From Klebsormidium nitens (Eukaryota; Plantae; Klebsormidiophyceae), in NCBI GenBank assembly GCA_000708835.1, contig DF237356.1, positions 19,942-83,941 on the forward strand: a stretch of 64,000 nt of DNA, in the 5' to 3' direction. Shown piece by piece: positions 43,901-62,993 of this stretch. How positions within the stretch are numbered: the stretch's first letter is position 1; every line of letters starts with the position of its first letter. Under the pieces are notes generated by a model that saw nothing but the letters and a program-made list of their open reading frames with translations, did not search any database and was not told where the DNA came from. The position numbers and the translations under genes were made by a program.

Positions 43901-46764
43901 TACGAAGTGGACCTGCGGTCCGCTCAGGAGGATCTGCGCCGGCGGAGAGTCCAGGAGACCGCGGTAAGCAGTGTCAATGCACCTCTCAGTATTACCACAG
44001 GATTGGCATTCTGACATTTTCTGCGCTTTGAGAGGCAAGGACGTCTGCTTCGGTGACATCAAATGCTCTCGGATCCTTTTGGAACTGGGACGTAGCATTA
44101 TGTAGCCGCTCTCTCAACGATAGGTGACCGCTTTGTTTTCAGCGGTCGTAGCCCGAGGTCAACATTGAAATCTTTATTCATGAGGCACTCCCGTCAAAAA
44201 GTGCCTTTAGAACATACTGGAGACGCGCGTGCGAAATCGAGCAAAGTGGACGCTGAGCCGTGTAAGCCGTCTCCTTTCCGCAGACAAAGCTGGCCATCAA
44301 GGAATGCTTCCAAAAGAGTCCCGGCACCGGTCTCGCCAAGGGCCTCGAGCAACTAGAGCGCGGCTTCCAAACCCTAAACCCCGCGCGCCCCAAACGGCGC
44401 CTGAGCAGCCTCTCCCCTATCGGCCGCATGCCTCTCGCGGCCGCGCCTGCGCCCGACGCGGCTCTCCCAAACCCCGAGGAGGGTTTGGAGGGCGTCAAGG
44501 CGACGGCCTCCGGCTACCTGGCGCGCAGGATGGGGCCACGTGGCGACTCGGACGGCGGCGATTGCGACATGGAGACGGACACGGACGGCGGGGAGGACAG
44601 CGGCGCGGAGGACTACGACGACCCGAACGACGAGGAGTACGTCCCGGGCCTGTCGCCAGCCCTGCCCGCGTATCGACGTCGAAGGGGCGCCTCGAACGGC
44701 GGCCGGCGGAGCAACCTGTCCGCCGGGAGCTCCGCCGAGCTGCAACTAGGCACGGCGGACAGTTTGGACGCGCCGGGGGGGAAGAAGAAGCGGCCGCAAA
44801 GTGGAAAACGGAGGGCCCCGTCGGAGCCGGGTGGGCTGGGTGGAGACTCTCTGGAAGGTGCGGAAGGGCCGTCTGACGGGGCCTCGGAAGGATGCCAGTG
44901 CACGGGGATGTGTAAAAGAAAGTGCGCGTGCAGGGCCGCCGGCGGCGAGTGTGGGCCGCACTGCGGGTGCTCCGTGGCGCGCTGCGCGAACAGACACGGG
45001 GCTGAGGAAGGTAAGAGCGCGTTCATTCCTGTCGGCGTCACTTTCGGTTGCTTTCGGAGCAAGGACAGCCGCCCTTATATGGGCATTCGTCACTGCCGCG
45101 TCTGGAAAAATGTCATCGGTGTACGGTTCGACGCCCATTGTTTTACTGGCCGTCCTCCACTGGAGGCGAGATCTCTTGTCACTCTGCAGTCTCCTTCCTG
45201 ATAACACGGCAACTGGCGTGGCTTGACACGCGCGTTTCAAGCACAGCCTGCGAACGGCCAACCTTTGGCTTTGCAACCCCTCCACTCAGATCATTCCGCT
45301 TTCCGCTGCAGGCGACGTCGATCCGGCCGCGAACGTGGCCGCCATCACCATGGACCTCGCCGAAGCGATGGAGACCGTTGAACTCGAAGCCGCGCTTCTC
45401 CTCGGCGGCAACCAAACCTCCCCCGAAACCCTCGAACCCTCCAGAACCCTCAGCCCCGAAACCCCTCCCGTGACGCGCGACGAGCCGGCCGCGACTTCGG
45501 ATGGCGGCAAGAGCCGCGCGTCGGCGAAGGTGGAGGAGGCACGTGCCTTGCTGGCGCGCCACGGGGCGAAGCTGACGCAAGCATGGCTGGAGGGCGCGAA
45601 GGGCGGGGCGGCGAAGCGCCAACCGCTGGGCGCGATTGACAAGAACCAGGTGAGCCACTCGCTGCTTTCGAATTTTTTGAGTGGGGCGGTCGGCGCAGCG
45701 AAGGTCTTCTGGCGACGCAAGCAGTGCGATGGTACGGTTGAAGCAGAGCTGGAAAGAAAACTCTGGAGGGTCCGAGGTCCGTTGCAGCAGCAGAAGAAGT
45801 CGCTGAAACGCATACCTGCGGTTCCTGCTCCCTTTCTTGGTCCTTTTCGCCTTTTGATCACATAGAGTTTCTCGTCTTGAACGAAGACATGGACCGCAGT
45901 AGAGTACACGGACATTTCACCCACTGCTGCCTCTTCCCGGAATGTCATTGCCATCTGCTGGGAGGAAGAAGCCTGGGCCGACTTATATTAGAATGCCAAG
46001 AAGGTGGCGGTGCATACCCAGGGGATGACACGCGGGAAGCGGTCTCGGATACTCTTCCATTTCCATTATTCGAATCCGCTGAGTTCCGCTCCGTGCAGAT
46101 GACTCAGGCCGCGCGACTTGGCGCCGCGAAGCAGAAGCGGCGACTGTACCAGCAGACACTGCCCAACCCCCTTACGGCCCCCAACAGCGAAAGCCCTCCC
46201 ACCGAGGCGCCTCCCGTTACGGGGCGCCAATCCCCATCTGAATCTCAGAACGGTTTGGGCGCACAGAATCAGACTGCAGTAGACGCGCGGTCCAACCGTC
46301 CCCGATCAGCGAATGCCCACGTGACTGTTTCTAGTTCCAGCGGACACCGGACAGCAACCGCACCCCCTGACGGTCCACAATCGGGCGACGGGCCCCTAGG
46401 AGAGAGCAGCCCCAACGTCGCCCACTGGGGCTCTGGTAGCCAAGCGCCAAGTGGCGCTGTTCCCGGCGACCGGAGGAAGCGTTCCGGGTCTTTTACTGGT
46501 CTGCAGCAAGTCGCCGACATCCTCGGCCCGCAGTCCGAGACGCCTTCCGGACGGCGGATTTCGGGCAGTCTGACTCACACCGTGTCACCCGCGCCGCAAG
46601 TTTCTGACCAGTCAGAGGCAAGGGATCCCCCGAAGCAGTCAAAAGAGCGTGTGAAGAGCCCGGGGAAAGGAGGCAAGGCGGGGAAGCACAGACGGGCGCC
46701 CAGCAGGGGAGATGGGGAGATGAGGGTGGGTGGACATGTAGACAAGGAGAATTACAGGTTATGA
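34904..46764 (+). CDS. KIN4: Kinesin-4 (chromokinesin/KIF4, FRA1/KIN4C-like) with Cys-rich domain, 21 exons, ~1547 aa
   Basis: Exons 34904-35056, 35449-35602, 35862-36010, 36390-36640, 37071-37255, 37465-37626, 37936-38027, 38324-38431, 38789-38974, 39470-39686, 40093-40220, 40617-40721, 40941-41054, 41417-41686, 42148-42253 (GC donor), 42570-42850, 43252-43382, 43843-43963, 44284-45010, 45312-45649, 46099-46764 total 4644 nt in phase. Motifs: [66 protein letters not shown]; kinesin-4 stalk; [34 protein letters not shown]. Confidence 0.95.
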
Positions 46765-48535
46765 GGATCCAGGACGGCTTAAAGATGACCAGGTGACGAA
46801 GTGCGTTGTCTTTAATGGCAGCTTGTTTCTGAGGATTTTCAGAGCTTCAAATTGATTGAATTCTTTGGATCCTGGCAAGAGGACCTTATCAGATTCGATG
46901 GAACGACAGGCCAAAGAAAAGCTACGATAGCCGACTGAACTTATCGAAGTGAAAGTTATCTTCTTCCATCTGCATCCTAGAAAATACAATTTTGTGTCCT
47001 GGAACGAGGAACACAATCTGTGGACGAGAGTGTTCAAACCATGCAGGCACTCGGATGGTCGATATTATTAGCCTCTCTCTCATAACGCTCACGATCAAGC
47101 CACGTGCATTCCCTGTCAGTCTTGCATACACACATGCTCAAAGTGTGCTGCAGTAATCAATTTGGCCGCGAAAATTTGGTGGATGTCGAGAGGCTAATGC
47201 AGTTCAGAAGTTGTCCTTTGAAAGCAATACTCACATTTGATAGGTGCAGTGTCCGCATACTGTCTTCGCCAATGCATATGCACATGACGCGGCCACAATG
47301 AAGGATGCCTGAAACTTAATATCTCCATACTACAGCTGATCGTTGTTGGCGGTTGACTTGCATGTCTCAGAATCACGTCTTTTGCAGCTTCTTGAAGATC
47401 GGACTCATCCCACTTGCTTGAGGGCGTTAAATGACGTGTACTACACCACAGATGCGATGTGTTTCATACAGAGGTACGTGGCGACCGCCTGTGTTAGGCG
47501 TTAATGTTGGGGTAGATCCAACGTCATATCGTTCGCAAATGGCGATAATCCGGGCTGCGGCCTCTCAATGTGTAGGATATACTAATGAATCTTGAACCAG
47601 GCATGAAAATTGTTGTTTCCAACAGCAGGCAGGCTAACGTCTGACGGTATAGTTCACACGGTTGAACTACAAAGCGTGTCAGCAGGTCAGTAGATCTTTC
47701 TGATATCGAAGCCTCCGGTATCCATTGTCCATGGCGGAGATGACGCCTTGGTTTGATCAGGTATAGGACCGCATGTCATGCGATTATATGCCCTCTGCAT
47801 CGATTGTCTTTGTCAATCACAAGTCCCATATGTCACTACTAGAACCTTGAATGGATGTCGGGTTACTCACATTCCAAACACCTGGAATGGTTTCTTTCTT
47901 GTGTGACGTGTCACCATTCTGGACGGCATGGAACTGTTTCGCTGTGCATGGAGCAAAGGCCCGGATTCCGAGCAAGTTCAGCTTTCAGCCAATACTTTAC
48001 AGAACTTTATGAATTTAACTTGCTGTATACATACTGCATGCCCGCTTCTGACTATCGGCTGCAATATGGGCAAGAGTTCTTGACCATCTGAATGGACTCA
48101 GCAGCGGATGAGTTCGCAATCCGTATCCAACAACCTTGAGTACCTATAATGATGGTCTTCATTGCGTTGGGCAATCGATCATTCAATGCAAGAACTCTCG
48201 TTTTTGGTCAGGCTACCTTTGTTGTGAGTCCGCTTCTGGGCGAACGTACGCTCATCGGAAGAAGAGCTGAGCACACCTTTTGCACCGGACCGCTGTTGCT
48301 GGTACCACTCGATATAAGCAAGGCAGAATGCACGAGCCATGTAGAAGTCCGTTGGAAAACTTTATATCCTATATCTGATGTCAGATTCCATGATCAAGCT
48401 TGATCATTAAAGACGGGCCGGCAGCTGTTGAGCCGCGTTGTAAAGAGACTTGAGAGCCGTTGACAGGTAGGGATACCTATTACTGAACGCCTCGACGACC
48501 TCGAGTAAGCCGGATCAGGGCCCGGCCCCTTACTG
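46089..48535 (+). repeat. Segmental direct repeat, copy 1 (kinesin last exon plus ~1.8 kb of 3' flank)
   Basis: Colinear similarity to 52709-55562, from CTCCGTGCAG|ATGACTCAGGCC through CCTCGAC[G/A]ACCTCGAGTAAGC..GCCCGGCCC. It is high across the exon and clearly lower in the flank. Confidence 0.9.
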
Positions 48536-49020
48536 CTATTCTTTTAGAACGGGGTTGAGTGCGGTAGTGCGGTTCGATTTCAGACTTTGCAATCGTATGC
48601 TGAACTGGCAGATTTCTTGAATTTGCTTGCCTTGAGCATGAAGTCCTAACGGTCTTGCGCCTGTCGACTCGGTTATATAGATCACATATGATACACATGT
48701 CGGCTGCGCGGAGCGGGTCCAAATTATTGTTGCTCCATAATAGGGTAGCTAAGCGAGAATAGGATCGTACATAATCCAGGAAACACATCAATTGGTATCT
48801 CAGGAGGCAATGGCCTCAGAATAAAAATGCAGAAGGAGATTTGGAATGCTCTATGCATGCGAGCTTAGTTGCTCGGAGTGACGTCATGATACTTCAGATA
48901 TAGACCAAAACACACGCCCCTCTTCTTGATTGCTAAGACCTGAGTGGAAAACCAAACGGGGAAAAGGGTTTCGTTCGTTCGACTTTCAGCCCTTCATCCG
49001 TCCGTTAGGACTCTCATTCC

Positions 49021-52000
49021 CTACTCGGCAAGATTGACTGTGTACAGAACCTGTCCCCGTGATCGCACCTCTGCTGAGACGAAGTGCTCGCAGAAGCTAA
49101 CGTGGTATGTGCTATGGACCAGCCGGTCGCGTACCGCAGGCCCCCCTACATTCCGGAAGTCCACAACTATCCAGGCCTTGAGCACTCCATCATTGATGAG
49201 CGGCCAGTAGCGCCCACCGGGTTGGAAGCTGCAAACCAAATTACAGGCTTGATGTCTTGAGCGAGATCGGATCCGTAACAAGATGTCTCTTAATGTTAAG
49301 AACCGCAGACACGCACCGCTTTCAGTGGGCTGCCAAGCGCGATGCCAATCTGCTGATGAGGATCTATAAGACAACCCTTGTTGCCAAAGGCCTCTTGCTC
49401 CTCGAAATTGTCGGTCAGCGCTCAAAAGCAACTTCAAGTTATTTTTATGAAGCAAAAAAGGAAAGGGGAAGGCATTGCACGCACCGAGCCTCGTGTTCCG
49501 CCAAGCCCCGGCCATCCACAAGGGCCTCGAATGCCCATCCCTGGGGCATCACAACCTTGTCGACATACGCCTTCAGCCCGTAGCGGATGCCGACGCCGGG
49601 CGAGATGCTGGCCTCCGATGGTAGTAGCGTATGTGCAGCCCTGTAGGAATGAGAAAAAGGAGCGGACGACCTGAAACAAATGTAAAGAAGATCCTTCAAC
49701 ATGAGAGCATGCAACCTGACTCTTGGATAACCAACAGCAATAACCAACAGCAAGGTATACAGATCTGCTTGCAAGAAGGTCAGGCTCATGAGGGGGGTCA
49801 GCACAGACGAAGCTTCTCAAGACGTCAACCGCCTGGGCCCATCCAAACACGCGAAAACATGCTGACTTTGAGCCTTAAAGGACGTCACGTTCCATAAGTT
49901 CGAGTTGCTGGTGCTATCTTACCGGTACAATTCCACATCAAACTGCGCTTCGTGGATGTCCCCCGTTTTGCTTGTGTTCAGACTCCTTTCCAGGCTCGAC
50001 CTCGACATCCTTGACACAACCTGCCTCAAAAAGACCTCGATGTCCTGGGGCATGTGCTGTGCTGCAGCGTAACGCGCGCGGAAGTAGTACGTGGTATACA
50101 CCTCGCGGTGTAGACCACTCGGGAACTCGATCTTCCCGAGGACGACATTCTCATGTAGGTAGCCCTTGCGGACCAGAGCGCGTGCAACTTCCGTCAGGGC
50201 CGGCCTCCGGCTTTGCAAGCCCGCAAAAGACACCTGAATGGAAAAGAGATATGACAAGGTTTAAGATGAACCAGGTTTTGATGACTTTCAACCCGGCATC
50301 ATCGCATATTACTTAACATCAGATACCAGCTTATTCCCTGGTTAGTGCAGATTTACATCAGTTACCAACTTCATGCAAGGTATCGCATGACCAGAGCGAA
50401 GCGGGCAGCACATGCTGCCTACACAGATCGTCACAAAGAATGTCAGTAGCGCAACTTGATGCTGAGGGGTTGAGTCCAATAACATGCCGTTTTACTTGCT
50501 TTCTAATTGCCAAGGCAGCTTTCTGGTCGTTTGTATCATACCCCGCCTTTGAGCATCCCACCAGAAGGCCTGAATATGAACTCCAGATCAGATTGAACCC
50601 TCAGTCATAAGTGTGCCCCTGGGCAAGAATCAAGAGTTTGGGCGTGCAAAAAAGAACAGCTTGTGAAGCATTGTAAATCCACAAGCCCCCCAACTTGTAT
50701 CGATGAGACTCAGCATCACTCACCGGGCCACTTCCGCTTAGAAGCTCGTCCAAGAGGTCCCACATGATGGGCGTATAGTCGTCGCTTCTGCAGGGGTGAT
50801 GAAAGTGGTCAGATCAGAAGCTGGTCTTCCTATACTCTCTCAGAAGAAGGGCAACACTGTCCGCAGCTTGAGGTAGATGAAAATAAGAATCAGCTTCAGG
50901 ACAAAAGAAAGAACTGCTTCAAAACCTATATGAGTTCTGCACCTTAAGGTCGTAAAGGAGAGCAACCAATGATGAGATGAACATTGATCTCAACAATTTT
51001 GCCCGGGCTGTCAGGTGCAAGCACAAAAATAAAGATGCTTCTTCTTGGCACACATCTCTTTCAGGTCCAGCCTTCATCACGGAGTGCACACACGACTGAG
51101 AAACTGCCTCCGACGTTTTCAAAGGACCAAATTTCTAAAAAAGAAGTCAGAATGCTTCTGAAAGACCAAGAAAGAAGGTAGTACCGTGGAAAAGTTCTCC
51201 CGTCCGCAAGACTTTCAACGAACGTGGGCCTGGAGAGGTAGAACAATGTCTTCTCTTGCCACTCAGCAGCGTCTGAGCAGCTGCTCGGAGACAGGCGGAC
51301 TCGGAGATGGTCCATGATGAGCATAGTGATGCCAGGGAGGAGCTCTGCTGCCTCAGCGACCATCTCCTTCAGCTCCCCGAGTGAGCCCTTCTCGAACCCC
51401 AGCAGCCTCTCATACTGCTCAAAGAGCTCGAGAAACTCTAACTCGGTGAACTGAAGGGCGATGTCGGTTGGGAGCGTGCGCCTGCAGTAGGCCAATATCA
51501 GATTGTGCCTGCAATAATCTCAGCTCATGAAGTTGCTGACATATTACTGACAGCAATGATACACTGAACTGCCCCCTCTAATCCGTGCTTGTCGACAGGG
51601 ACATCCAACTGTACATATTCAATGTCGAATTGAACTACTGGTCAAAGAAGAAAGGGAATACTCGCTTCTGGAGGTCCTGAACAAAGAACGAAAACATAAG
51701 CTGCACAGAGTACGCAAAGAACCTGGAGGCACCATTTCTCAGCATGTCTATGAATCTCTTCCAAAAACATCATTGAAGGTACCAGTCAGGAGATCCTTAA
51801 CGTTGAGCGCTTCTGATAGAGCATACAGAAGGGATTGATTACCTCATCGCCACCCGGTTGTCTGCCCCTATAGTGATTGGAGATGCTACGGCACTTTGAG
51901 CTGTCGAACCCCTTGACGCCGCCACCACAATGTCGACGGAGTGTCCATTAGAGGGCAGCAGCCCTTTCAGGTTGTCCCAAAACTCAAGATCGCTGGCATA

Positions 52001-52432
52001 GATGACGTGCGCTTCATCAAAAATTAGCATCTTTCTTCTGATCACGAGCGGATTTGCACTCTTTGTGGGGCTCGGCTCTGGGGACGTGAGCAGATCCTCC
52101 AGGGACATTCCCGTGACCCGGAACACAAAGTCCGCCAGAGATTCATTTCTTCTTTTCCTGGCGCAATTTATATACAAGACAAACGCGTTATCGTACTCTT
52201 GCCGCTTGCGTGCCCTGCCATAAATCAGCTGGCAGGTGGCCGTCTTGCCCATCCGAGGGACTGCAACTATCCACAAGAGCTTGACTCGCTGCACCTTAGC
52301 AATTAGGGCATCAATAGTTGCAGTTCTATACGTAAATAGCCCTTGTTGTATCCGCCCATATGCTCCATCAGCTTCGTTTCCTGCTAACTGAGTAACACCA
52401 AAATCAAAATCTGCATGCACATGAGCCGCCAT
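49021..52432 (-). CDS. Crinkler-type P-loop NTPase + PD-(D/E)xK restriction-endonuclease-fold protein, 541 aa, no recognisable N-terminal header
   Basis: Exons 52432-51843, 51481-51185, 50787-50724, 50233-49923, 49640-49485 and 49228-49021 total 1626 nt with no stops. Walker A LWIVAVPRMGKTATCQL; Walker B MLIFDEAHVIY..FWDNLK..IVVAASRGS; FPSGLHREVY; HEAQFDVELYRAAHTLLP..ISPGVG..KAYVD..WAFEALVDG..LAEHEARF..GGRY..WIVVDFR. Confidence 0.75.
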
Positions 52433-52718
52433 TCCACACTCTGCTAAGCGCGCCCACAGTGAGCTAGAGTAATGGTGCACTTGAGCAGATCAAGTCAGCA
52501 AGCCGAATGAAGTTCCGGCCACTCAGAGGCCGCCATGTCATACCCCCCTCGGCAGACCGGCCATGCCCAGCACTTTTAAGGTTTTGGTACCGTCGTTCTT
52601 GCATCACCTGTTTGAACGGAAGCAAGTCGGCGATACATACCGATGAAATGACAAGCATGGACCAGTCGATTGTACTCATTCACCTCTGTAAACAAGTTGA
52701 TACCGATTCTCCGTGCAG

Positions 52719-53386
52719 ATGACTCAGGCCGCACGACTCGGCGCCGCGAAGCAGAAGCGGCGACTGTACCAACAGATACTGCCCAACCCCCTCACGGCCC
52801 CCAACAGCTAAAACCCTCCCACCGAGGCGCCTCCCGTTACGGGGCGCCAGTCCCCATTTGAATCACAGAACGGTTTAGGCGCACAGAACCAGACTGCAGT
52901 AGACGCGCGGTCCAACCGTCTCCGATCAGCGACTGCCCACATGACTGTTTCTAACCCCAACGGACATCGAACAGCAACGGCACCCCCTGACGGTCCACAA
53001 GCGGGCGACGGGCCCCTCGGAGAGAGCAGCCCCAACGTCGCCCACTGGGGCTTTGGTAGCCAAGCGCCAAGCGGCGCCGTTCCCGGCGACCGGAGGAAGC
53101 GTTCCGGGTCTTTTACTGGTCTGCAGCAGGTCGCCGACATTCTGGGCCCGCAGTCCGAGACGCCTTCCGGACGACGGATCTTGGGCAGTTTGATTCATAC
53201 TGTGTCACCGGCGCCGCAAGTTCCGGACCAATCAGACGCAAGGGATCCCCCGAAGAAGTCAAAAGAACGTGTGAAGAGCCCGGCGAAAGGAGGCAAGGCG
53301 GGCCCGGAAGCACGGACGGGCTCCCAGCAGGGGAGATGGGGAGATGAGGGCGGGTGGACATTTAGACAAGGAGAATTATAGGTTAT
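52719..53386 (+). pseudogene. Disabled duplicate of the kinesin-4 terminal exon
   Basis: Intact acceptor, then [30 protein letters not shown] followed by an in-frame TAA at 52809-52811 (GAA in the original). There is a further indel near 53300. Confidence 0.8.
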
Positions 53387-55286
53387 GAGGATCCAGAACG
53401 GCATACCGTTGACCAGGTGATGACGTGAAAGTTTCTTTAATCGGCAGGTTGTTTCTGAGGACATTTCGAGCTTTAGTAAAATTGGTTGAATCTTTTGAAT
53501 CCTGGCCAGAGGACCTTACTGAAATCAGTTTCGATGGAACGACAGGCCAATGAAAGTTATAACGGCATGAGTCAGTGAACCTTATGAAAGTGGAAGTTAG
53601 GTTCTTCCATCTGTATCAGGTAGAAAGCTCTCTGTTTTTTGGATCAAGGAACACAGTCTTTGGACGAGAGGGTCAAAACTATGCAGATGTCACTCGACTC
53701 GTCAATTTTACCACTTCTTTCTCATGACGCTCGCGTTCAAGCCAGGTGTATTCCTACCAGCATGCATACCACTTGCAATCTCAGTGTGCTGCAGCTTATC
53801 ACATTGAACGTGGAAATCCCAATGCACCAATGAAGGTGTCCTTGATTAAAATTATGCACTGTGATAGGTGCGATGTCCGCATGACGTCTGCGCCAGCATC
53901 ATTATGACGGCAAGCCCCTGTATGTTGCATGTGACAAATAGAATATGCTCTAAACAAGCAATAATGCATATAGATATCAATCGCCCAATGAATGATTGTC
54001 TTCAATGCAAATTGTTGGACTACCGTCGTCTTTTGCAGCTTATTGAAGAAATATCGACTGTGAAAACGTGCTTGAGTGCCGATGCATGACGTATGCATCA
54101 CGATGCGTTTCGTCCAGAGGTATGTAGCGGCCGCCCGCCTGAGTTAAGCGCAAATCCAACGGGAATTCGCCAATCCTGGTCATTTACAAAGCAGACAGGA
54201 CGGCTGGAGGGAGGACATGGACTCCCGCGGGCAACCTTCGTGAGCCCCCTTGTCTATAATCTCAGGGAATCGCGGCGGCTGACCCTGACGGAGAGACCTT
54301 TTTCGGACTTTCGGACCTTCGACTCGTAGCTGGTCATAGCTGAATTTGAACTGACCAACCGGAAGCCCTCCTTCCATTTATTCAGACAGGGTCATGATGA
54401 CGGTACACCATTTGCGTGCACACGGTGAAACTACAAACCGGCGTAACAGCATGTCAGTCGATCTTTCTTAATCATACACCCAAGGCTCTGATGATTGCCC
54501 AGATGGCGCCGTGGTCTGATCAGGTAGAATTGCATGCCATGCGGATTTGCCCTGTGCATCAATGATCATGGCATCATTGTCACTCAGTACAAGTCCCAGC
54601 ACTTGGCCAGAGATTCAACAGATGTCTGTGTATAATGGAATCATCACATTGGTTGCTTCCTTGTGCAACCTGTACCCATCCTAAATGACATGAATCCGCT
54701 TTGGCAGATTATAAGACCAAAGGCCCATTTCAATGCGGATGCTTTTGCTACGCTACATGCGGAGCATAGTACCGCTCTACAGAACTCTATGTAAGTAGCT
54801 TTCTGTCAGATACTGCGGGCCGCATGTCAGCCTTTGAACAGTGTCCGAGTCAGCTGCATGGGCTTAGTGCTCGACCATCTTAAAGGACGCAGAACTTGAG
54901 TGCAAATTCGCATCAAGTATCCTGAGTACTACCTATATGGTCTTCAACGCAATGGCACTCAGTGGGCACTCATTCCCGGGCAGGCTGCCTTCACTCTCAG
55001 TTTGTTTCGGGGCGGACGCTCATGGGTGGGAAGGAGAGCTGAGAAGACCAGTTGCGCAGGACGGGCGCACTTGAGACCACTGCTCAATCCGGTAGCACTT
55101 GATGACTTGATAGGATCAAAGAGTAGGATTACACGATGCACGAGCCATGCAGAAGCTGAGTCCCTCCGCTCCATCTGATGTCAGGATCCATGACGGAGCT
55201 TGGAGTCATGAAAGAAAGGCGGCTTTTGAGCCGCGCTGTATAGAAGTTCGAGATTGAGCTGTGATGGACAGATACGAAGAATGTAG

Positions 55287-55526
55287 TGAACCAGGCTTGT
55301 CTTGGGCTTGGATTTCCGCGGTGGAAGCAGTTTCCGCATGTTTCCGCGGGGCTTCCGCGGGGCTTCCGCGCTGCTTCCGCAGCGGGTCCGCGTCTCTGCA
55401 GACTTTCCACTATGCTTCCGCTGTCATCATAGCCCTCATGTTTCTAGCGTATTATGTAACTTTTCGTATGCTTTGAACATCCTTCCGCGCACCAGATCCG
55501 CATGGAATTCCGCACGCTCTTGAACC
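55287..55526. mobile_element. Candidate small non-autonomous insertion rich in TTCCGC repeats
   Basis: Present only in repeat copy 2. Flanked by TGAACC at 55287-55292 and 55521-55526, where copy 1 has a single TGAACG. Internal 11-bp GCTTCCGCGGG tandem units. Confidence 0.4.
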
Positions 55527-57436
55527 TCGACAACCTCGAGTAAGCAGACAAGCCCGGCCCGGATCTGGCGTGCATTAGGCGTCGATGTGACCAGAACGGG
55601 ATAGCTTTTCACTTTTTCATGTGTTGCTCGCCCGGCCCGTTAACGTTGCTCGTCACTAGGCTAGCGGCCGCCGCATTGAAGAACATGGCGGGCCTTTTCT
55701 AAAACATTGCACATATGTAAGTCGTTTGATACCTCGCTCAATTCATCCATCCATTCATTCATGTCTTGCGCATTGAATTGCCAGCCTCGAAGGTAATCCG
55801 CCAACTTGACCTCCCCTTGACCTCGCAGGCATCACTGCTTTTGCGACCTGAGTCCTGACTCGTTATGACCGCCAGGTCCCGTGACCGTTGGATCAACCTT
55901 TCAGGGAGATCTTGAATATGCTGTGCCGTCCGATGGGGTCCTACTTTACATGCTATCAAATCGTGCCAAGTGGCAGCTTCGGAGCTGACGGCGCTCCCCA
56001 GCTTTCAATGAAATGGTGCCACGTATCAGAGCTTTCACCGACATCAGGACTAATCAGGCTGGTAACAAATAATGGCGGCTTGGCTCAGGAGTCAGGGCTG
56101 GTATCAAAATTCAGAACCTACCTAGACATTCTCCCCTTATCTCCTGATCTACATGCTTCGCTCTCAACCTTCTTCTCGCGTTGTGTGGATCAGCTGCGCC
56201 AGAGAGCTGATCAATTGAGGTGTGCTTCGCTTGCAGCCCGCCGGCATGGCGGCCTCTGCTCTAGCTCGGGCCGCAGCTCCCTCTTTATTTTGTGTCAGTG
56301 GCAACAAGACCAGTGAGAGAAAGGGGGCGTTCCATTCTCAGTGTAGAGTTAAATCGCTTCAATCAGGTTGGGGAACCGATTGTGCAGCGCAAAGGTGAGT
56401 TGACAAGCCATTACGGCGAGCTGAATCTATGCATGCCCTTGGGCCCAGCTGTTTTTGAGTATCTTTGTGGAGTGTCTTTGTCTTAAAGGAAGGTCGGATT
56501 TACTATCACCTTAGAGACAACGTGAAGACAGATAGAAGGAAGAAAGGAAGGACATTGACTTTGTAAACATGGCCTACAGAGCATGTGTCAGACAGTGACA
56601 GTACTACTGTCAGGACTTCTCAGGAATGCGCCACAACTGATGCCGTTATGCAAGGCCAGGCTGACTTATCGAATTGATCTTTCCACTACTCACTCGTAAA
56701 ACCACACAATCTGTGCCAGGTAGTGCGACATTGTTCATGTTGCAGATCAGTTCATGTTCAATGTGTTCCGCCTCTGCAAAGGTGGTGGTGTGGAAGCTAA
56801 CCATCCCATTTTGGATTTGCAGTTTGACTGCGAGGGCTTCCACCTTTACCACCGGTGTGCAGCTAGGAGCCACTCCATGCAGCTCTCTACGGTCACATGG
56901 TAGGTTCCTGCAGTGCACAATTCTACAGTCCCACTTCAACAACCGATAGTTTCAAAAGAACTTTTGAGGGACTGTCCCTGATCTGGACTGCTGTTTTGCA
57001 AAATCTTTGTGCTACTACCTTTGTCTGGGTGCGTTTGGTTTTCAAAATTCTGATTTTCCGAGTACATTGTTCTCATTTTCAAGAGCATTAGGCTCGTTCA
57101 GCTTTGACGCAGATGGTGATGTACTTGGTGAGCCGGTAGCTTCGTATGCAATACCAAATCAGTTCAAGCAAATTCTATCATTTTCCAACTAAAAGTTCCT
57201 GGCAGCATATTCTTTCATCATTAAACACGAACTTGCGCCAGTCAGCCGTAGTCCAGAGTCAGGACGTTTGTGCACCAGGGCTCTCAGGGCTTTATGATTT
57301 GCCATCTCTCAAGCTATGCATATCTTTCCTGAGCGTCGTTAAAGGCAACACCTTCGTAGAAGGAATTGGATAAAGGCAAGACAAATACAGATAGAAAAGC
57401 CGCGTGATCAGTCCCGGCGTTTCAATTTGTTTGCAG

Positions 57437-60400
57437 CACGCAATCCCCGCAGCATAACCTGCAAGGGGAATGACGACAACGGGCTTGTGCCGACCAAGGT
57501 GAAGAAGAAGGATAAGAAGAAGAAGAAGTACTTCAAGCGGGAGGATGTGATTGAGGCCGAGGAGGAGGGGGACCCTATCGGCGACCTGTTCCCACGGCCC
57601 AGCTGGGAAGGCATCAAGCGAAGCGTGAGTCTTTGTCAACTGAACCCCATGGTCTGATCTTGTGCTCCAGGCTTGTCTAGGACTGTCGGTGAGAATACTG
57701 TGGTGACATTGCGAAGATTCGAGGCGATTCATGGTTGAGGGGTTATGTTCCACTTTCAATATTTGAGTGGTGCAAAGGGGTCTGAAGAAATAAGGACTGC
57801 AAAGCTTCGATTGTCTGGTTGCACATTCAATCTGGGGTCCAGGAAAGCTTCTGCAAGGTGTGAAGGGGTCTTTGTTGTCTGGGGACACCTTATCACTCCC
57901 TTCTGAAGATGCTGCTGAAATCATTTGTAGACGAATCGTTGCTCGGATGCGTCAGAATAGGTGCTCGAATCATTGAAGGGGTCGCCGATTAGACTCTGCA
58001 ACAACAAAGAGTGGATGCACTCTGATTGAATTCTTGTAGCGGGCAGTGTCATAAACGTTAAGTGTTCACGTGAAGTCTAAATAGCCAATAACATAGAAGT
58101 TCGCCAATACGCAGGCGCACGTGTCGGACGACGCATTTGCAAAGCGGGAGAAGCCCCAGCCGGAGGACGGCAAGCGGCCGTACAAGTACAAGGAGGAGCT
58201 CGCGGAGCTGCAAGCGGAGCTAGTGAAGTTGCAGGAGTGGATCAAGCACAAGGGTGAGCGCGGGCTTTCCGAGAAAGAATTCCAAGGGCTTTGGGTTCAC
58301 AGAGTGCCCTGTCACGAGGTTTGGTGTTGTGTAAGAGAATGGCGAGTTTCCCGGATGTAGAGCTTGGATAGAACAAGGATTTCTTTGCCTAGTTCCGGAA
58401 CTTGAATTTGAGCAGCTGCAGGGGTGGGTTGATATCGAGGCTGAGCATTTACTCCATCTCTAAATTTCTTAAATGCAAGGGGACATTTCGCACACGCGTG
58501 AAGATTGTGATGCAAGAAGAGCTTTGCAGATTAACTCAACGTTTCGTTCAGCACGCATTACGGCTGGTGCGGAGTGATAAATGTCAAGGAGGCTCGATTT
58601 CAGGGACTCGGGCTCTAACTTCACAGATGGATAAGGAGGGCCCTGCTTGATCGACTCTTTAACTTGCGAGACTTTTCTTTCCGCTTACCTTAAACTTCTA
58701 TCTTGGAGGATGAGAGAGTCAGCATTCTTGCCCGTCACTCCAGAAACAGACGTTGTGAGTCAGCAGAAAGCCCAGGTATCAATCCGGGTCAGCCCCGTTT
58801 GAGTGAGCTGGCAAGTTTTCTCTGTGCCAACGATTGTTTAGCCTCCTTTTCCCGCCTCCTTATGTCCTCCTTATACTTACTCTTTGTTTTTCCTCTGCAG
58901 GCTTGCGTGTTGTGACCATTTTCGAGGGGCGCGACGCGGCTGGCAAGGGCGGCATCATCAGGCGTATCACGGAGCGCACGAGCCCCCGGACGGTCTCCGT
59001 CGCGGCGCTCGGCACGCCGTCCGATCGGGAGAAGACGCAGTGGTACTTCCAGGTGGGCTGAAGAGACTGTTCGTTTCTGGTCACCTTCTCTGGTCGACTG
59101 ATCAATCAGCTGTACCTTCTGCTGACGAGGAGATTCGATCTGTGCTTTTTCGACTGATCAATCAGCTGTACCTTCTGCTGACGAGGAGATTGGATCTGTT
59201 TGACATCCGTCCGACCGCAAAAAAGACGGAGTGGTGCTTTCAGGTGGGCGGAAGATAAGGCTAGCCTCCACGTCATTAGGCTGTGATGATTTGCCTGAAA
59301 ATCCAGCCGTGATCTGTATTTGAGATCTGTATTTGGCGGTTGGACTTTTCTCCATGCTCGTACGGCACGGCTACCAGCCAGAAGACGACGCAGTGGCGCT
59401 TTCAAGTGTGGGAGCTGGATGGTCTCTTGTTGGGGGTGGTGCTTCTTTCGCGGTTCAAGAAGCTGGTTGTGTCGATATTCCCTGAACGGCGAAATTCCGA
59501 TGTTTGTTTGGAACGACCACTGAGAAGAGGCATAAGCGATTTCGAGTGTGGTCGAGGGGGTTTTCAGGTCAGGTCCGACTCCGAAGTTGAAAGTATGTTG
59601 CATTCAGCGAGTGCTTCTTTCCGCACGCTTCGCTGCGCCGAAAAGGGTCTCTGTCTTTCCACCCTCCTCTTTCCCCTTTCAAAAGAAACGAGCCCGGTCA
59701 TGCTTACCCAGCATGGGCCCCAAAACGAAAGGGTGCGAAGAAGTGTTCATGCTTGGCGTCGTTTATACAACGGCAGCCACACAAAGCTTGAACGGGGTGT
59801 CGGTGCGATTCAGGACCACAAAGCTCCGCAAGCGGCCGCCTAGGGCGGAGTTGTCGAACGCATAGTTGCATTAATCATCAACAACTCGCAACGTTTCGCC
59901 ATCCAACTTCCTCTGTAGCTTTCGCAAAAGGTACTCAAATCGCAGATTCGAGATCATACGAAGAGCCTTCTGGTCAGACAAACCACGTTCGACACGATCG
60001 CAGGCTGGAATGAGTACGGCAGGTGCCTCGATTGCGAACCGTCTCAGCAGACCCGCGGTTTCTAGCCGACCTTCGATTCGAAACGTCGCATACGTGAGCT
60101 GCGTTTCCTCAACTCTCTCTGGATTTTCTGCGCAGCGGTACGTGCCACGTCTGCCGGCCGCTGGCGAGTGGATCATCTTCGATCGCAGCTGGTACAACAG
60201 GGCGGGAGTGGAGAAGGTGAGCTCGTTACGAATGAGTCGGCCTCCTTTTTGGAATGTTTTGGTAACCGAGAGCTACCAAAACGCACCGCTATGTCAGATT
60301 ATACCTGCTTATGCTTTCCAACGTGTGCGTGACGTGCCTAGCCATGGATCCTGGTGCCTCGATGATCATCGTGCAGCAATCAATAGATGCACCCGGATCA

Positions 60401-62993
60401 GGTTGCTGGCATTCTTGGAACTTGCATCACGGAAGTGAAGTCCCTAAGTTGGAGTCTTCCATGTTGCAAGCAAGTGGAGATTTCGACGGCCAGGAAGAGT
60501 GCGGTTGATGATTCACTTGATCATTAGTGATTCCAGAGCTGAAGCAGTTACGTATTGTTAATTTTGTCCTCCATATACTTTCGTTTTAGGCCAAGCATCT
60601 CCTCGCAGGAGTTAGTGACGCAGTGCTGACGTTTGCTTGTCCGCAGGTCATGGGCTTCTGCACTGATGCAGAGTACAAGCAGTTCCTGAAAACGTGAGTC
60701 GCTTCCGCTCAGACGCTGTCCGCAGCACTGAGTTGCTTACCGATAGCAGCACCACGAAATTCCGTAGTTTGACCTCAACTAGACCGGGACGAGTTTCGGG
60801 CGGCACTCAAAAAGTGGTGCTTACCCAAGACGTTAGCGCCGATCACGTCGATTAACGCTGATTACGCCGATTGCGTTGATTACGTTGCGGCGACTTGGTT
60901 AGTCCGATAAGGGTTTAGAACAGGAAGCCCGCCTACTTGTAGCGGGAGACTGTATTGAGCATTAAACTCATCGCAAGCTGTATGCAGGGAGTATCTTCAA
61001 ACTGAAACCTTCGTTCTGGTAGACAACGAAGTAATTGCCGCAGTTTCATCGATCGCAGACTAGGGCGTCTGTCATGCTAAGCGGTCGCCCTGAACGCCAG
61101 CGCAGCTCCAGGCGAAGCGGGCGACCAGTCTTGACACTCTTTGTGCGCGCGCGAGAGCAGCGACCTGATCCGCACATTGCGTGTGCAGTTGCCCGCTGTT
61201 TGAGAACCTGCTGATCGACTCGGGGATCATCCTGATCAAATACTGGGTGTCCGTCAGCTCCAAGGAGCAGGAAAAGCGGTTCAAGGTAGGTTGTGCAATC
61301 CAGTGACAAACCCAGGGCGCAAAGCAGCTTTTCTTATTCGTCGCCGTATGTTTAGTTGGGTCAGTCAGGGTCCGCAAACCGTCAAAATTATATGCCCCGG
61401 AAAAGCCGCTTGAGGTGGTTGCGATTTTGACACTCGCCTCGTCAAAGGAAAAGATGGAAGGCAGACAAGCCGGAATCATCTCTCATCGCGTTATTCCTAG
61501 TCTCGCCTGTGTACGAGGAGCGTCCGCAAGCCTGTGTTCGGTGCTCGGACGGTTTGCCGAAGCGTGAAGCGTCCGGAGATGTGCTGTTGACCGAAGCGAA
61601 CGGTGGACTGTCTTTCTGTCTTGCATATGGAAGTGAATCTCTGATTGTGAATGACTGGTCGACTTTACACATAAATCTGCTAGCGGACAAAACGGTGTTC
61701 GTTACCCTGTGTTCGGACGGTTCGCAGGAGCGCTTGACGCGCTCGAAGCAGCGCTTTTGTCCACTGTGAAGGCAAGTACTTGTCTCCACCAAATGATAAC
61801 TTCCTTTTCCGTCTTGCTCTGTTAACCGCTTTCCTTCTTAGTAGATTCCAGCCAGCGGACGAACAGCGTTCTCGATTATGTTTGTACGGTTCGCAGGCGC
61901 TTGAGGCGTCCGGAGAAGCGTGCCTATCCGCTTCAAACGACACCTTTTCTTTTTGCCCCGCTCTAACGCTCCTGCTCTTTCTTACTTGAGCGAACTCCAG
62001 GTAGCGGACGAGGAGCATTCTTAACCCTGTGTTCGGACGGTCCGCAGGAGCGCACTTTTCCGCTTCAAATGACACACTTGTTTTCTGCCTTGCCTGCTCT
62101 TCCTTATAGTAGTGAACTCCAGCTAAAAGATGAGGAGTGGGCTGAATTTGTGTTTGGACGGTCCGCAGGAGCGCTTGAAGCGTCCGGAGAAGCGGTGGAA
62201 GCTGAGCCCGATGGACCTGTACGCGCGCAGCCGCTGGTCCGATTATTCGTACGCCAAGGACGTCATGTTCTCCCACACGGACACCAAGACGGTGAGCGGC
62301 ACAAACTCTGCTTTCAGAAACTCTCAAGAGCTTGCTGAATTCGATGAACGGATCTCGCGTTTTGCCATCTTGGAAGGTTGTATAACAAACCCCGAAGTGG
62401 TTTGCGGTCGACTTTGTTTGCGACCCGTTTTTGGAGAAGTGCGGATCTATGAAGCGGGGCTTCCACGGGCTTGTGAGAGACGCACGAGTTTACCCGGTGG
62501 TTCTCAAGCAAAGTTGGAGTCACTTAAGGAAAGCCAACGTGAGGTTAACTGTTCAACCTTTCTGGTCCGATACTTTTATTTTGGTATGGATTCCGACCTG
62601 ATATTTGAAGCTTCGCCGCTACTCTTTCAATGTACTCGAAAGCGTTTTATATTGGCACACCGTTGTTTCTCTCGAGGAGCTTGTTTCAGATATGTATACG
62701 CAAATCTACTCGTCGAGTGTTCATGCTCATTTTAAAGCAAAGCCCGTGCTTGTACCTTAATCTGCATGCTTTTCTCACTCTTTTCTTCTTTTCGTGCTGC
62801 GCAGTCCCCGTGGTTCGTGATCGACGGGAACGACAAGAAGGCTGCGCGCCTCAACACGATCCGGCACATCCTCTCCCTGATTCCGTACGAGGACGTCATC
62901 AAGACGCAAGACATCAAGATCCCGCCCAAGCAGGAGGACAACTACGAGCGGCCGCCGTTGCGCGAGCAGACGTTCGTCCCGCAGGAGTTTTAG
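57437..62993 (+). CDS. ppk2: Polyphosphate kinase 2, class I type; start exon not located
   Basis: Exons 57437-57624, 58115-58253, 58901-59052, 60136-60216, 60647-60693, 61189-61285, 62169-62291 and 62805-62993, all in phase. Motifs: [108 protein letters not shown]. Confidence 0.93.
59094..59199. repeat. Near-perfect ~50-bp tandem duplication (period 56) in a PPK2 intron
   Basis: TCGACTGATCAATCAGCTGTACCTTCTGCTGACGAGGAGATT[C/G]GATCTGT at 59094 and 59150. Confidence 0.9.
59208..59412 (+). repeat. Two copies of the 3' end and donor of PPK2 exon 58901-59052
   Basis: Real: CCGTCCGATCGGGAGAAGACGCAGTGGTACTTCCAG|GTGGGCTGAAG. Copy: CCGTCCGACCGCAAAAAAGACGGAGTGGTGCTTTCAG|GTGGGCGGAAG (59208-59251). A degenerate copy lies at ~59364-59412. 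Confidence 0.85.
61500..62200 (+). repeat. Four partial copies of the acceptor and start of PPK2 exon 62169
   Basis: TGT(G/T)TT.G[G/T]ACGGT[T/C]CGCAG|G(A)GCGC junctions at 61728, 61897, 62048 and the real one at 62169, plus a degenerate copy at ~61531-61580. Confidence 0.85.

Follow-up and report, generated by a model that had tools for sequence, protein, structure and literature searches.

According to three papers (PMC5289972, PMC6131194, PMC12957317), the commonest C-terminus of Phytophthora Crinkler (CRN) effectors combines a nucleoside triphosphatase (NTPase) domain, a helix-turn-helix (HTH) domain and a restriction endonuclease (REase) domain, and the same papers, citing Zhang et al. 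2016, place Crinkler/RHS-type (CR) proteins also in eukaryotes that live freely, algae and land plants among them. The P-loop domain of the CRNs has been proposed to serve as a switch or an assembly module, and the NTPase+REase module has been derived from prokaryotic transposon-linked pairs (PMC5289972). The reason why free-living organisms keep Crinkler C-terminal modules is an open question (PMC12957317). One described case is the teleost AACRNL, a header-degenerate Crinkler-like toxin at work inside a free-living host (PMC12957317). Here we describe the gene KFL_004070110, which in the streptophyte alga Klebsormidium nitens lies on the minus strand (49021–52432) of a 64,000-nucleotide stretch of contig DF237356.1, to which we refer as the window. 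This nuclear gene is resident, intact and spliced. From its sequence it appears to encode only the "toxin" half of a CR protein, with no detectable ubiquitin-like or other delivery header, and we consider it likely that its product is a resident header-less CR toxin half acting as an intracellular NTP-switched nuclease.

Compared with CRN and CR effectors such as KAL3662135.1 of Phytophthora oleae, the algal protein is homologous over the whole module that follows the header and keeps the same domain order, with the shared invariants GKT, DEA, E..ELY.A, D, W.xE.L, H..RF, G.Y and DF. It differs from them in having no ubiquitin-like LxLFLAK/HVLVxxP header and in being encoded by a gene with five spliceosomal introns, and its host is a free-living streptophyte with no indication of export. 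With AACRNL it shares a Crinkler-derived toxin module in a free-living eukaryote and an N-terminal targeting domain that is lost or degenerate, and AACRNL sets a precedent for a conflict-type role inside the cell. However, AACRNL carries an ART toxin domain instead of the NTPase-REase module, and it spreads with adjacent hAT elements whereas no transposon association was found at the algal gene. We found no paper that links Klebsormidium specifically with Crinklers; a single paper, on saprotrophy in oomycetes, contains both words.

Relationship to Crinklers and gene structure

The assignment to the Crinkler family is decided by an end-to-end pairwise alignment. Residues 2–480 of the public protein model of the gene (P0001, annotated as a "hypothetical protein" of 481 aa) align by BLASTP with residues 175–633 of the P. 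oleae protein (P0014) at E = 4e-29 and 24% identity. The P. oleae protein carries the UniRef name "Crinkler effector N-terminal domain-containing protein" and its first 109 residues match the Pfam Crinkler profile PF20147 (2.4e-14), which places the aligned region behind the header. A 595-aa EukProt transcriptome protein with a different helical N-terminus (P0012) is also similar to P0001 (BLASTP 1e-20). A scan of metagenomes yielded one locus (L001), a contig with a fungal-looking, intron-split gene in which a Crinkler-header open reading frame (ORF; PF20147, 9e-17, ending in IHILVELP) is combined with an ORF for the NTPase and a C-terminal one that matches residues 275–440 of P0001, and the scan of viral contigs gave no match. 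The toxin module of the algal gene is thus homologous to those of known CRNs (P0014, L001), and the Crinkler-type NTPase and REase module proposed in the preliminary description of this DNA is borne out, as a succession of NTPase, HTH and REase-like domains, by the alignment with the P. oleae protein.

Among 1.84 billion representatives, an exhaustive search with exon 1 gave 14 matches (E ≤ 1e-3), mostly fragments in the form of exon-1-like ORFs. When exon 1, P0001 or a three-sequence profile served as the query of a word-index protein search, only the gene's own entries were returned; the method is weak for so divergent a family, and the result does not point to a lack of relatives. Ten stretches of similarity to exon 1, spanning query residues 95–148, come from one protein of 6474 aa (P0006) and probably reflect low-complexity Ser/Pro sequence. 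KFL_004070110 appears to belong to a diversified paralogue family.

The gene consists of six exons that together comprise 1626 nt, i.e., 541 codons and a TAG stop. This model is the unique solution obtained from stop-free segments in matching frames together with a list of phased GT/AG sites. The exons were checked one by one, each in its proper phase, and in the protein comparisons exon 1 was analysed by itself and the remainder through the database protein P0001. The tblastn blocks of P0001 fall exactly on the six exons at 96–100% identity, none of the exons contains an in-phase internal stop, and all five introns (256–490 nt) begin with GT and end with AG, so that the intact six-exon frame of the preliminary description stands. 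The GC content is 0.51–0.65 in the exons compared with 0.44–0.48 in the introns, and the coding sequence has a GC content at third codon positions (GC3) of 0.65.

Exon 1 (51843–52432, minus strand, 590 nt) starts with the ATG at 52430–52432 and ends with ADNRVAM followed by AG|GTAATC. It encodes 10–15 non-conserved N-terminal residues, a conserved block preceding the P-loop, Walker A, a Ser/Pro loop and Walker B. Exon 2 (51185–51481, minus strand, 297 nt) covers a helical region C-terminal to the NTPase core (RTLPTDIALQFTELEF...GRTFP). It is 100% identical to P0001 by tblastn, its GT-AG junctions and phase were verified, and its alignment with P0014 and P0012 requires no additional exon. Exon 3 (50724–50787, minus strand) is 64 nt long and encodes SDDYTPIMWDLLDELLSGSGP. 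Exon 4 (49923–50233, minus strand, 311 nt) encodes the winged helix (HTH) and also HEAQFDVELY, the opening helix of the nuclease-like domain at the C-terminus, in which two Glu residues are invariant. Exon 5 (49485–49640, minus strand, 156 nt) encodes the core strands of the latter domain and the beginning of a helix, AEHEAR, and exon 6 (49021–49228, minus strand, 208 nt) the C-terminal strands (FQPGGRYW...WIVVDFR) and the TAG stop (49021–49023). Four of the five introns (1, 2, 4 and 5) are in phase 2 and each splits an Arg codon (AG|G, CG|A, CG|G and CG|C, respectively). A seventh exon at about 51640–51770 was considered and ruled out, as the deposited model and the P0012 and P0014 alignments are complete without an insertion there.

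The sequence evidence favours a start different from the public one. The exhaustive search with exon 1 retrieved P0001 as 100% identical from exon-1 residue 61 on, and since 481 + 60 = 541, the 541-aa frame is the public model lengthened to the ATG at 52430–52432. The public start is the Met of AVPRMGKT (M61, window position 52252, minus strand), which lies inside the Walker A loop, 60 codons late; a model that starts within the P-loop leaves out the preceding strand. Nine exon-1-like ORFs of other assemblies (P0002–P0005 and P0007–P0011) align to the window from about residue 12 and share the block GLG..EG...R...G.F..R..T followed by the P-loop, which makes 52430–52432 the better start. Most of these ORFs end at the donor point of exon 1 (...DQRIPLR compared with ...ADNRVAMR), indicating that the position of intron 1 is common to divergent paralogues.

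NTPase and nuclease-like domains

Both NTPase motifs reported in the preliminary description were found in exon 1, Walker A as AVPRMGKT (52241–52264, minus strand) and Walker B as MLIFDEAH (52007–52030, minus strand). Together with a profile match, the GKT and DEA motifs identify the domain as a P-loop NTPase of the AAA_22-like type, in the neighbourhood of ORC/Cdc6/STAND. The Pfam AAA_22 profile scores 26.3 bits on exon 1 (1e-5) against a cut-off of 27, compared with 30.2 bits in the paralogue P0003; the TniB profile gives 0.053, and the language-model features of exon 1 resemble AAA_22 and AAA_35 clusters. The preliminary description had also pointed to the Ala in place of the first Gly of Walker A. 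The substitution is real, and the homologues show it to be a family trait: their Walker A sequences read APPLSGKT, SPPSSGKT, ATPCSGKT and APPCTGKT, the first position being A, S or G. Because Ala is normal across the family at this position, it does not indicate a defect. Between Walker A and Walker B sits a Ser/Pro loop of the pattern S-P-x-x-S-P (TSPEPSP, ~52060–52090, minus strand), which is kept in most of the exon-1-like paralogous ORFs (P0002–P0008), possibly for phosphorylation or regulation.

Taken as a whole, the predicted architecture is a P-loop NTPase followed by helical linkers, a winged helix for DNA binding and, at the C-terminus, a REase-like domain, with the winged helix taken from a homologue's model. 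All C-terminal motifs listed in the preliminary description (YVD, WAFE, ELYRAA, EHEARF, GRY and VVDFR) are present. ELYR|AA straddles intron 4, EHEAR|F straddles intron 5, and GRY and VVDFR lie in exon 6. Two of the motifs contain invariant acidic residues, both encoded by exon 5, namely the Asp of YVD (49559–49561, minus strand) and the Glu of WAFEAL (49526–49528, minus strand), the latter in the context E-x-L and not E-x-K. In an alignment of four distant members, the invariant residues of the last 130 positions (P0001 numbering) include E352, E358, Y360, D388, W396, E399 and L401, followed by H410, R413, F414, G418, Y420 and D436.

On mixed evidence, we consider it likely that the C-terminal domain adopts the PD-(D/E)xK (REase) fold, given its predicted topology, its motifs, a comparison with a model from the ESM Atlas, and the literature. 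In both AlphaFold models the secondary structure is helix, three strands, helix, strand; the first helix carries invariant Glu residues, and strands two and three carry the Asp and a Glu, respectively. The ESM Atlas model of the KFL_004070110 protein has a predicted local distance difference test score (pLDDT) of 0.73. The structures nearest to its residues 325–481 are fungal clusters, with template modelling (TM) scores of 0.74–0.88; in a Mucoromycota cluster among the matches (TM 0.78), 38% of the members carry Crinkler headers. The same segment matches the bacterial PDDEXK_3, PDDEXK_9, PDDEXK_4 and DUF8370/8371 clusters with TM scores of 0.51–0.59, and several of the matched bacterial clusters show a fusion with an AAA_35 or AAA-ATPase_like domain. 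A search based on language-model features gave 0.90–0.91 to PDDEXK_3 and DUF8371 clusters. The bacterial combinations of AAA_35 or AAA-ATPase_like domains with PD-(D/E)xK domains (PDDEXK_3, PDDEXK_9, DUF8370/DUF8371) resemble the algal protein in that a P-loop ATPase is followed by a REase-fold domain, and the predicted C-terminal structure of the alga matches theirs with TM scores of 0.55–0.59. They differ in that there is no Pfam match at the sequence level and the Lys is replaced by Leu in the alga, and the relationship is drawn from predicted structures only.

Several observations weigh against this fold assignment. The C-terminal domains of the four members have no match in Pfam, NCBIfam or PADLOC (E ≤ 1) or among the sequences of the PDB (E ≤ 10), and the profile libraries gave no match in the exons other than exon 1. 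The AlphaFold models, built from alignments of three and four sequences, reach mean pLDDT values of 47 and 51, with about 50 in the nuclease-like domain. Structure searches of the PDB with these low-pLDDT models (Foldseek, VIA) retrieved AAA+ and winged-helix structures only, and no REase. The Lys of the (D/E)xK signature is Leu in all four aligned members, although the invariant His and Arg of the next helix might substitute for it. The assignment stands on one predicted-structure source together with the literature. Of the REase domain announced in the preliminary description, the predicted topology and the motifs fit and the Atlas model gives structural matches, whereas the match to a PD-(D/E)xK profile hidden Markov model that it had put forward as a check did not materialize in Pfam, NCBIfam or PADLOC.

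The header question and the genomic surroundings

A known CR effector carries an N-terminal header, either ubiquitin-like (LxLFLAK...HVLVxxP) or of an alternative helical type, and neither was found in exon 1, in the upstream region or elsewhere in the window. Exon 1 has no match to PF20147 or any other header in Pfam. The 276 nt before the ATG (52433–52708, minus strand) contain no header-like coding sequence, and an in-frame stop occurs 19 codons upstream of the ATG (52490–52492). Ten minus-strand ORFs across the 5.6 kb between the gene and a PPK2 gene have no meaningful Pfam match, the header regions of P0014, P0012 and L001 have no tblastn match in the window, and no export signal was found in the protein. 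A 2A leader was also considered and ruled out, as no NPGP motif occurs in any frame. The header-less state claimed in the preliminary description is therefore supported for exon 1, for the 5.6 kb upstream and for the 64-kb window.

It is possible that the gene model misses an upstream exon. In that case the header or another leader would reside in an unannotated exon, the gene would encode an ordinary CR protein, and "header-less" would be an artefact of annotation. A CAG acceptor-like site is indeed present just 5' of the ATG, at 52440, and the public model has already misplaced the start once (M61). We nevertheless regard this explanation as unlikely, because the in-frame stop intervenes and the candidate upstream acceptors have no pyrimidine tract, and because the 5.6 kb that returned none of the Pfam, BLAST or NPGP signals described above are mostly taken up by a plus-strand exon duplicate. 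Moreover, several of the paralogous ORFs likewise start 8–15 residues ahead of the conserved block.

The exon duplicate is part of a repeated stretch that brackets the gene, which is the sole occupant of a 4.2-kb unique segment (48511–52708). The left copy (46089–48510, plus strand) comprises the 3' exon of a neighbouring plus-strand gene, with an ORF extending to 46764, and the sequence downstream of it. The right copy (52709–55545, plus strand) is 85% identical to it over 1.1 kb (46089–47175 compared with 52709–53817), and patchy similarity continues to 48510 and 55545, respectively. The similarity starts about 10 nt ahead of an acceptor-like CAG|ATG. Over the first 221 codons, 27 changes between the two copies are synonymous, 20 are non-synonymous and one is a stop, and third positions account for 29 of the 50 differences. 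This coding type of divergence, together with the acceptor-like start, rules out reading the repeats as long terminal repeats (LTRs) or target duplications and indicates paralogous exons of the plus-strand neighbour. The right copy, which has an in-frame TAA at 52809–52811, is probably a decaying partial paralogue. Neither exon-like ORF (46089–46764 and 52709–53381, plus strand) has a Pfam match.

Farther out, a GC-rich ORF of the left neighbour (44428–45201, plus strand, GC 0.67) contains a Cys-rich stretch of the CxC type and has no Pfam match. On the other side, polyphosphate kinase 2 (PPK2) exons are located at 58121–59061 and 62130–62732 (plus strand; Pfam 2.5e-19 and 9e-11) and belong either to one spliced gene or to two plus-strand copies.

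The preferred reading, an intact resident gene, can also be set against the possibility of a silent relic, that is, an intact-looking but unexpressed or functionless member heading for decay. The 541 codons in six exons contain no stop or frameshift, all splice sites are canonical, every family-invariant residue is retained, and the difference between GC3 and the GC content of the introns argues for maintained coding. Set against these features, the small number of sequence relatives, the slight departures of Walker A and B from the residues usual in the family (V replacing P, M replacing S and H replacing Q) and the position next to a decaying exon duplicate leave the relic very improbable.

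The preliminary description had further suggested a selfish or mobile element or a horizontal acquisition. A DNA transposon would be expected to show terminal repeats, a target-site duplication, a transposase or multiple near-identical copies, and none of these was found within the window: neither inverted nor direct repeats of at least 9 nt occur where the unique segment begins and ends, the large ORFs scanned encode no transposase or reverse transcriptase, and there is no second copy of the gene. Weak tblastn matches of exon pieces at 8.5 and 10–12 kb are not collinear and were taken as chance. With neither terminal inverted repeats, target-site duplications, LTRs, a transposase nor a second copy in the window, mobility is unsupported. 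A recent horizontal transfer is made unlikely by the five introns, the first of them at a position shared with the nine divergent paralogous ORFs, by the low identity to the oomycete protein, and by a host-like GC3, which resembles that of the neighbour exon. Although the gene stands alone between duplicated stretches of 1.1–2.4 kb, the module has been traced to transposon-linked prokaryotic pairs, and the closest relatives found over the full length comprise an oomycete protein, a EukProt transcriptome protein and a fungal-looking metagenome gene, we consider it highly unlikely that KFL_004070110 forms the core of a mobile element descended from NTPase+REase transposons, is carried by one as cargo, or was recently acquired from a fungus or an oomycete.

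Proposed function and significance

Since the protein has no delivery header, we infer that it acts in the alga's own cells, where it would serve as an NTP-switched DNA nuclease. In this scenario the winged helix would bind DNA, the binding or hydrolysis of NTP by the P-loop domain would license or assemble the nuclease, and the putative E...D...E-x-L centre, possibly aided by the invariant His and Arg of the next helix, would cut the DNA. Whereas the exon-intron structure, the homology with CRN C-termini from end to end, the NTPase motifs, the winged helix as modelled in a homologue and the lack of a detectable header are demonstrated, the nuclease activity, its regulation by NTP and the biological role are inferred. 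A role in genetic conflict, either in defence against invading DNA or as a self-serving toxic activity kept in check, appears most likely and is preferred over that of an exported effector. The protein may be the anti-parasite nuclease suggested in the preliminary description.

These considerations lead us to speculate that the gene and those exon-1-like ORFs that begin shortly ahead of the shared conserved block could represent a header-less CR clade that is kept in streptophyte algae in the form of cell-autonomous, NTP-switched immune nucleases. Such proteins would be a eukaryotic counterpart of the bacterial conflict systems that join an ATPase to a PD-(D/E)xK domain, and possibly a pre-effector state that gave rise to the headed Crinkler toxins. 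We offer this extension tentatively and consider it doubtful.

The new points are the header-less state and the corrected start of the public gene model, and no new kind of system is revealed; as header-less genes of free-living organisms were already known, the finding is a modest addition and not a surprise. Crinkler C-terminal modules have been studied as pathogen toxins, and an intact header-less copy in K. nitens, an alga that can be cultured and stands near the lineage of the land plants, would provide a convenient test case that could show whether the NTPase-nuclease module works inside the cell and how its nuclease is controlled by the NTPase.

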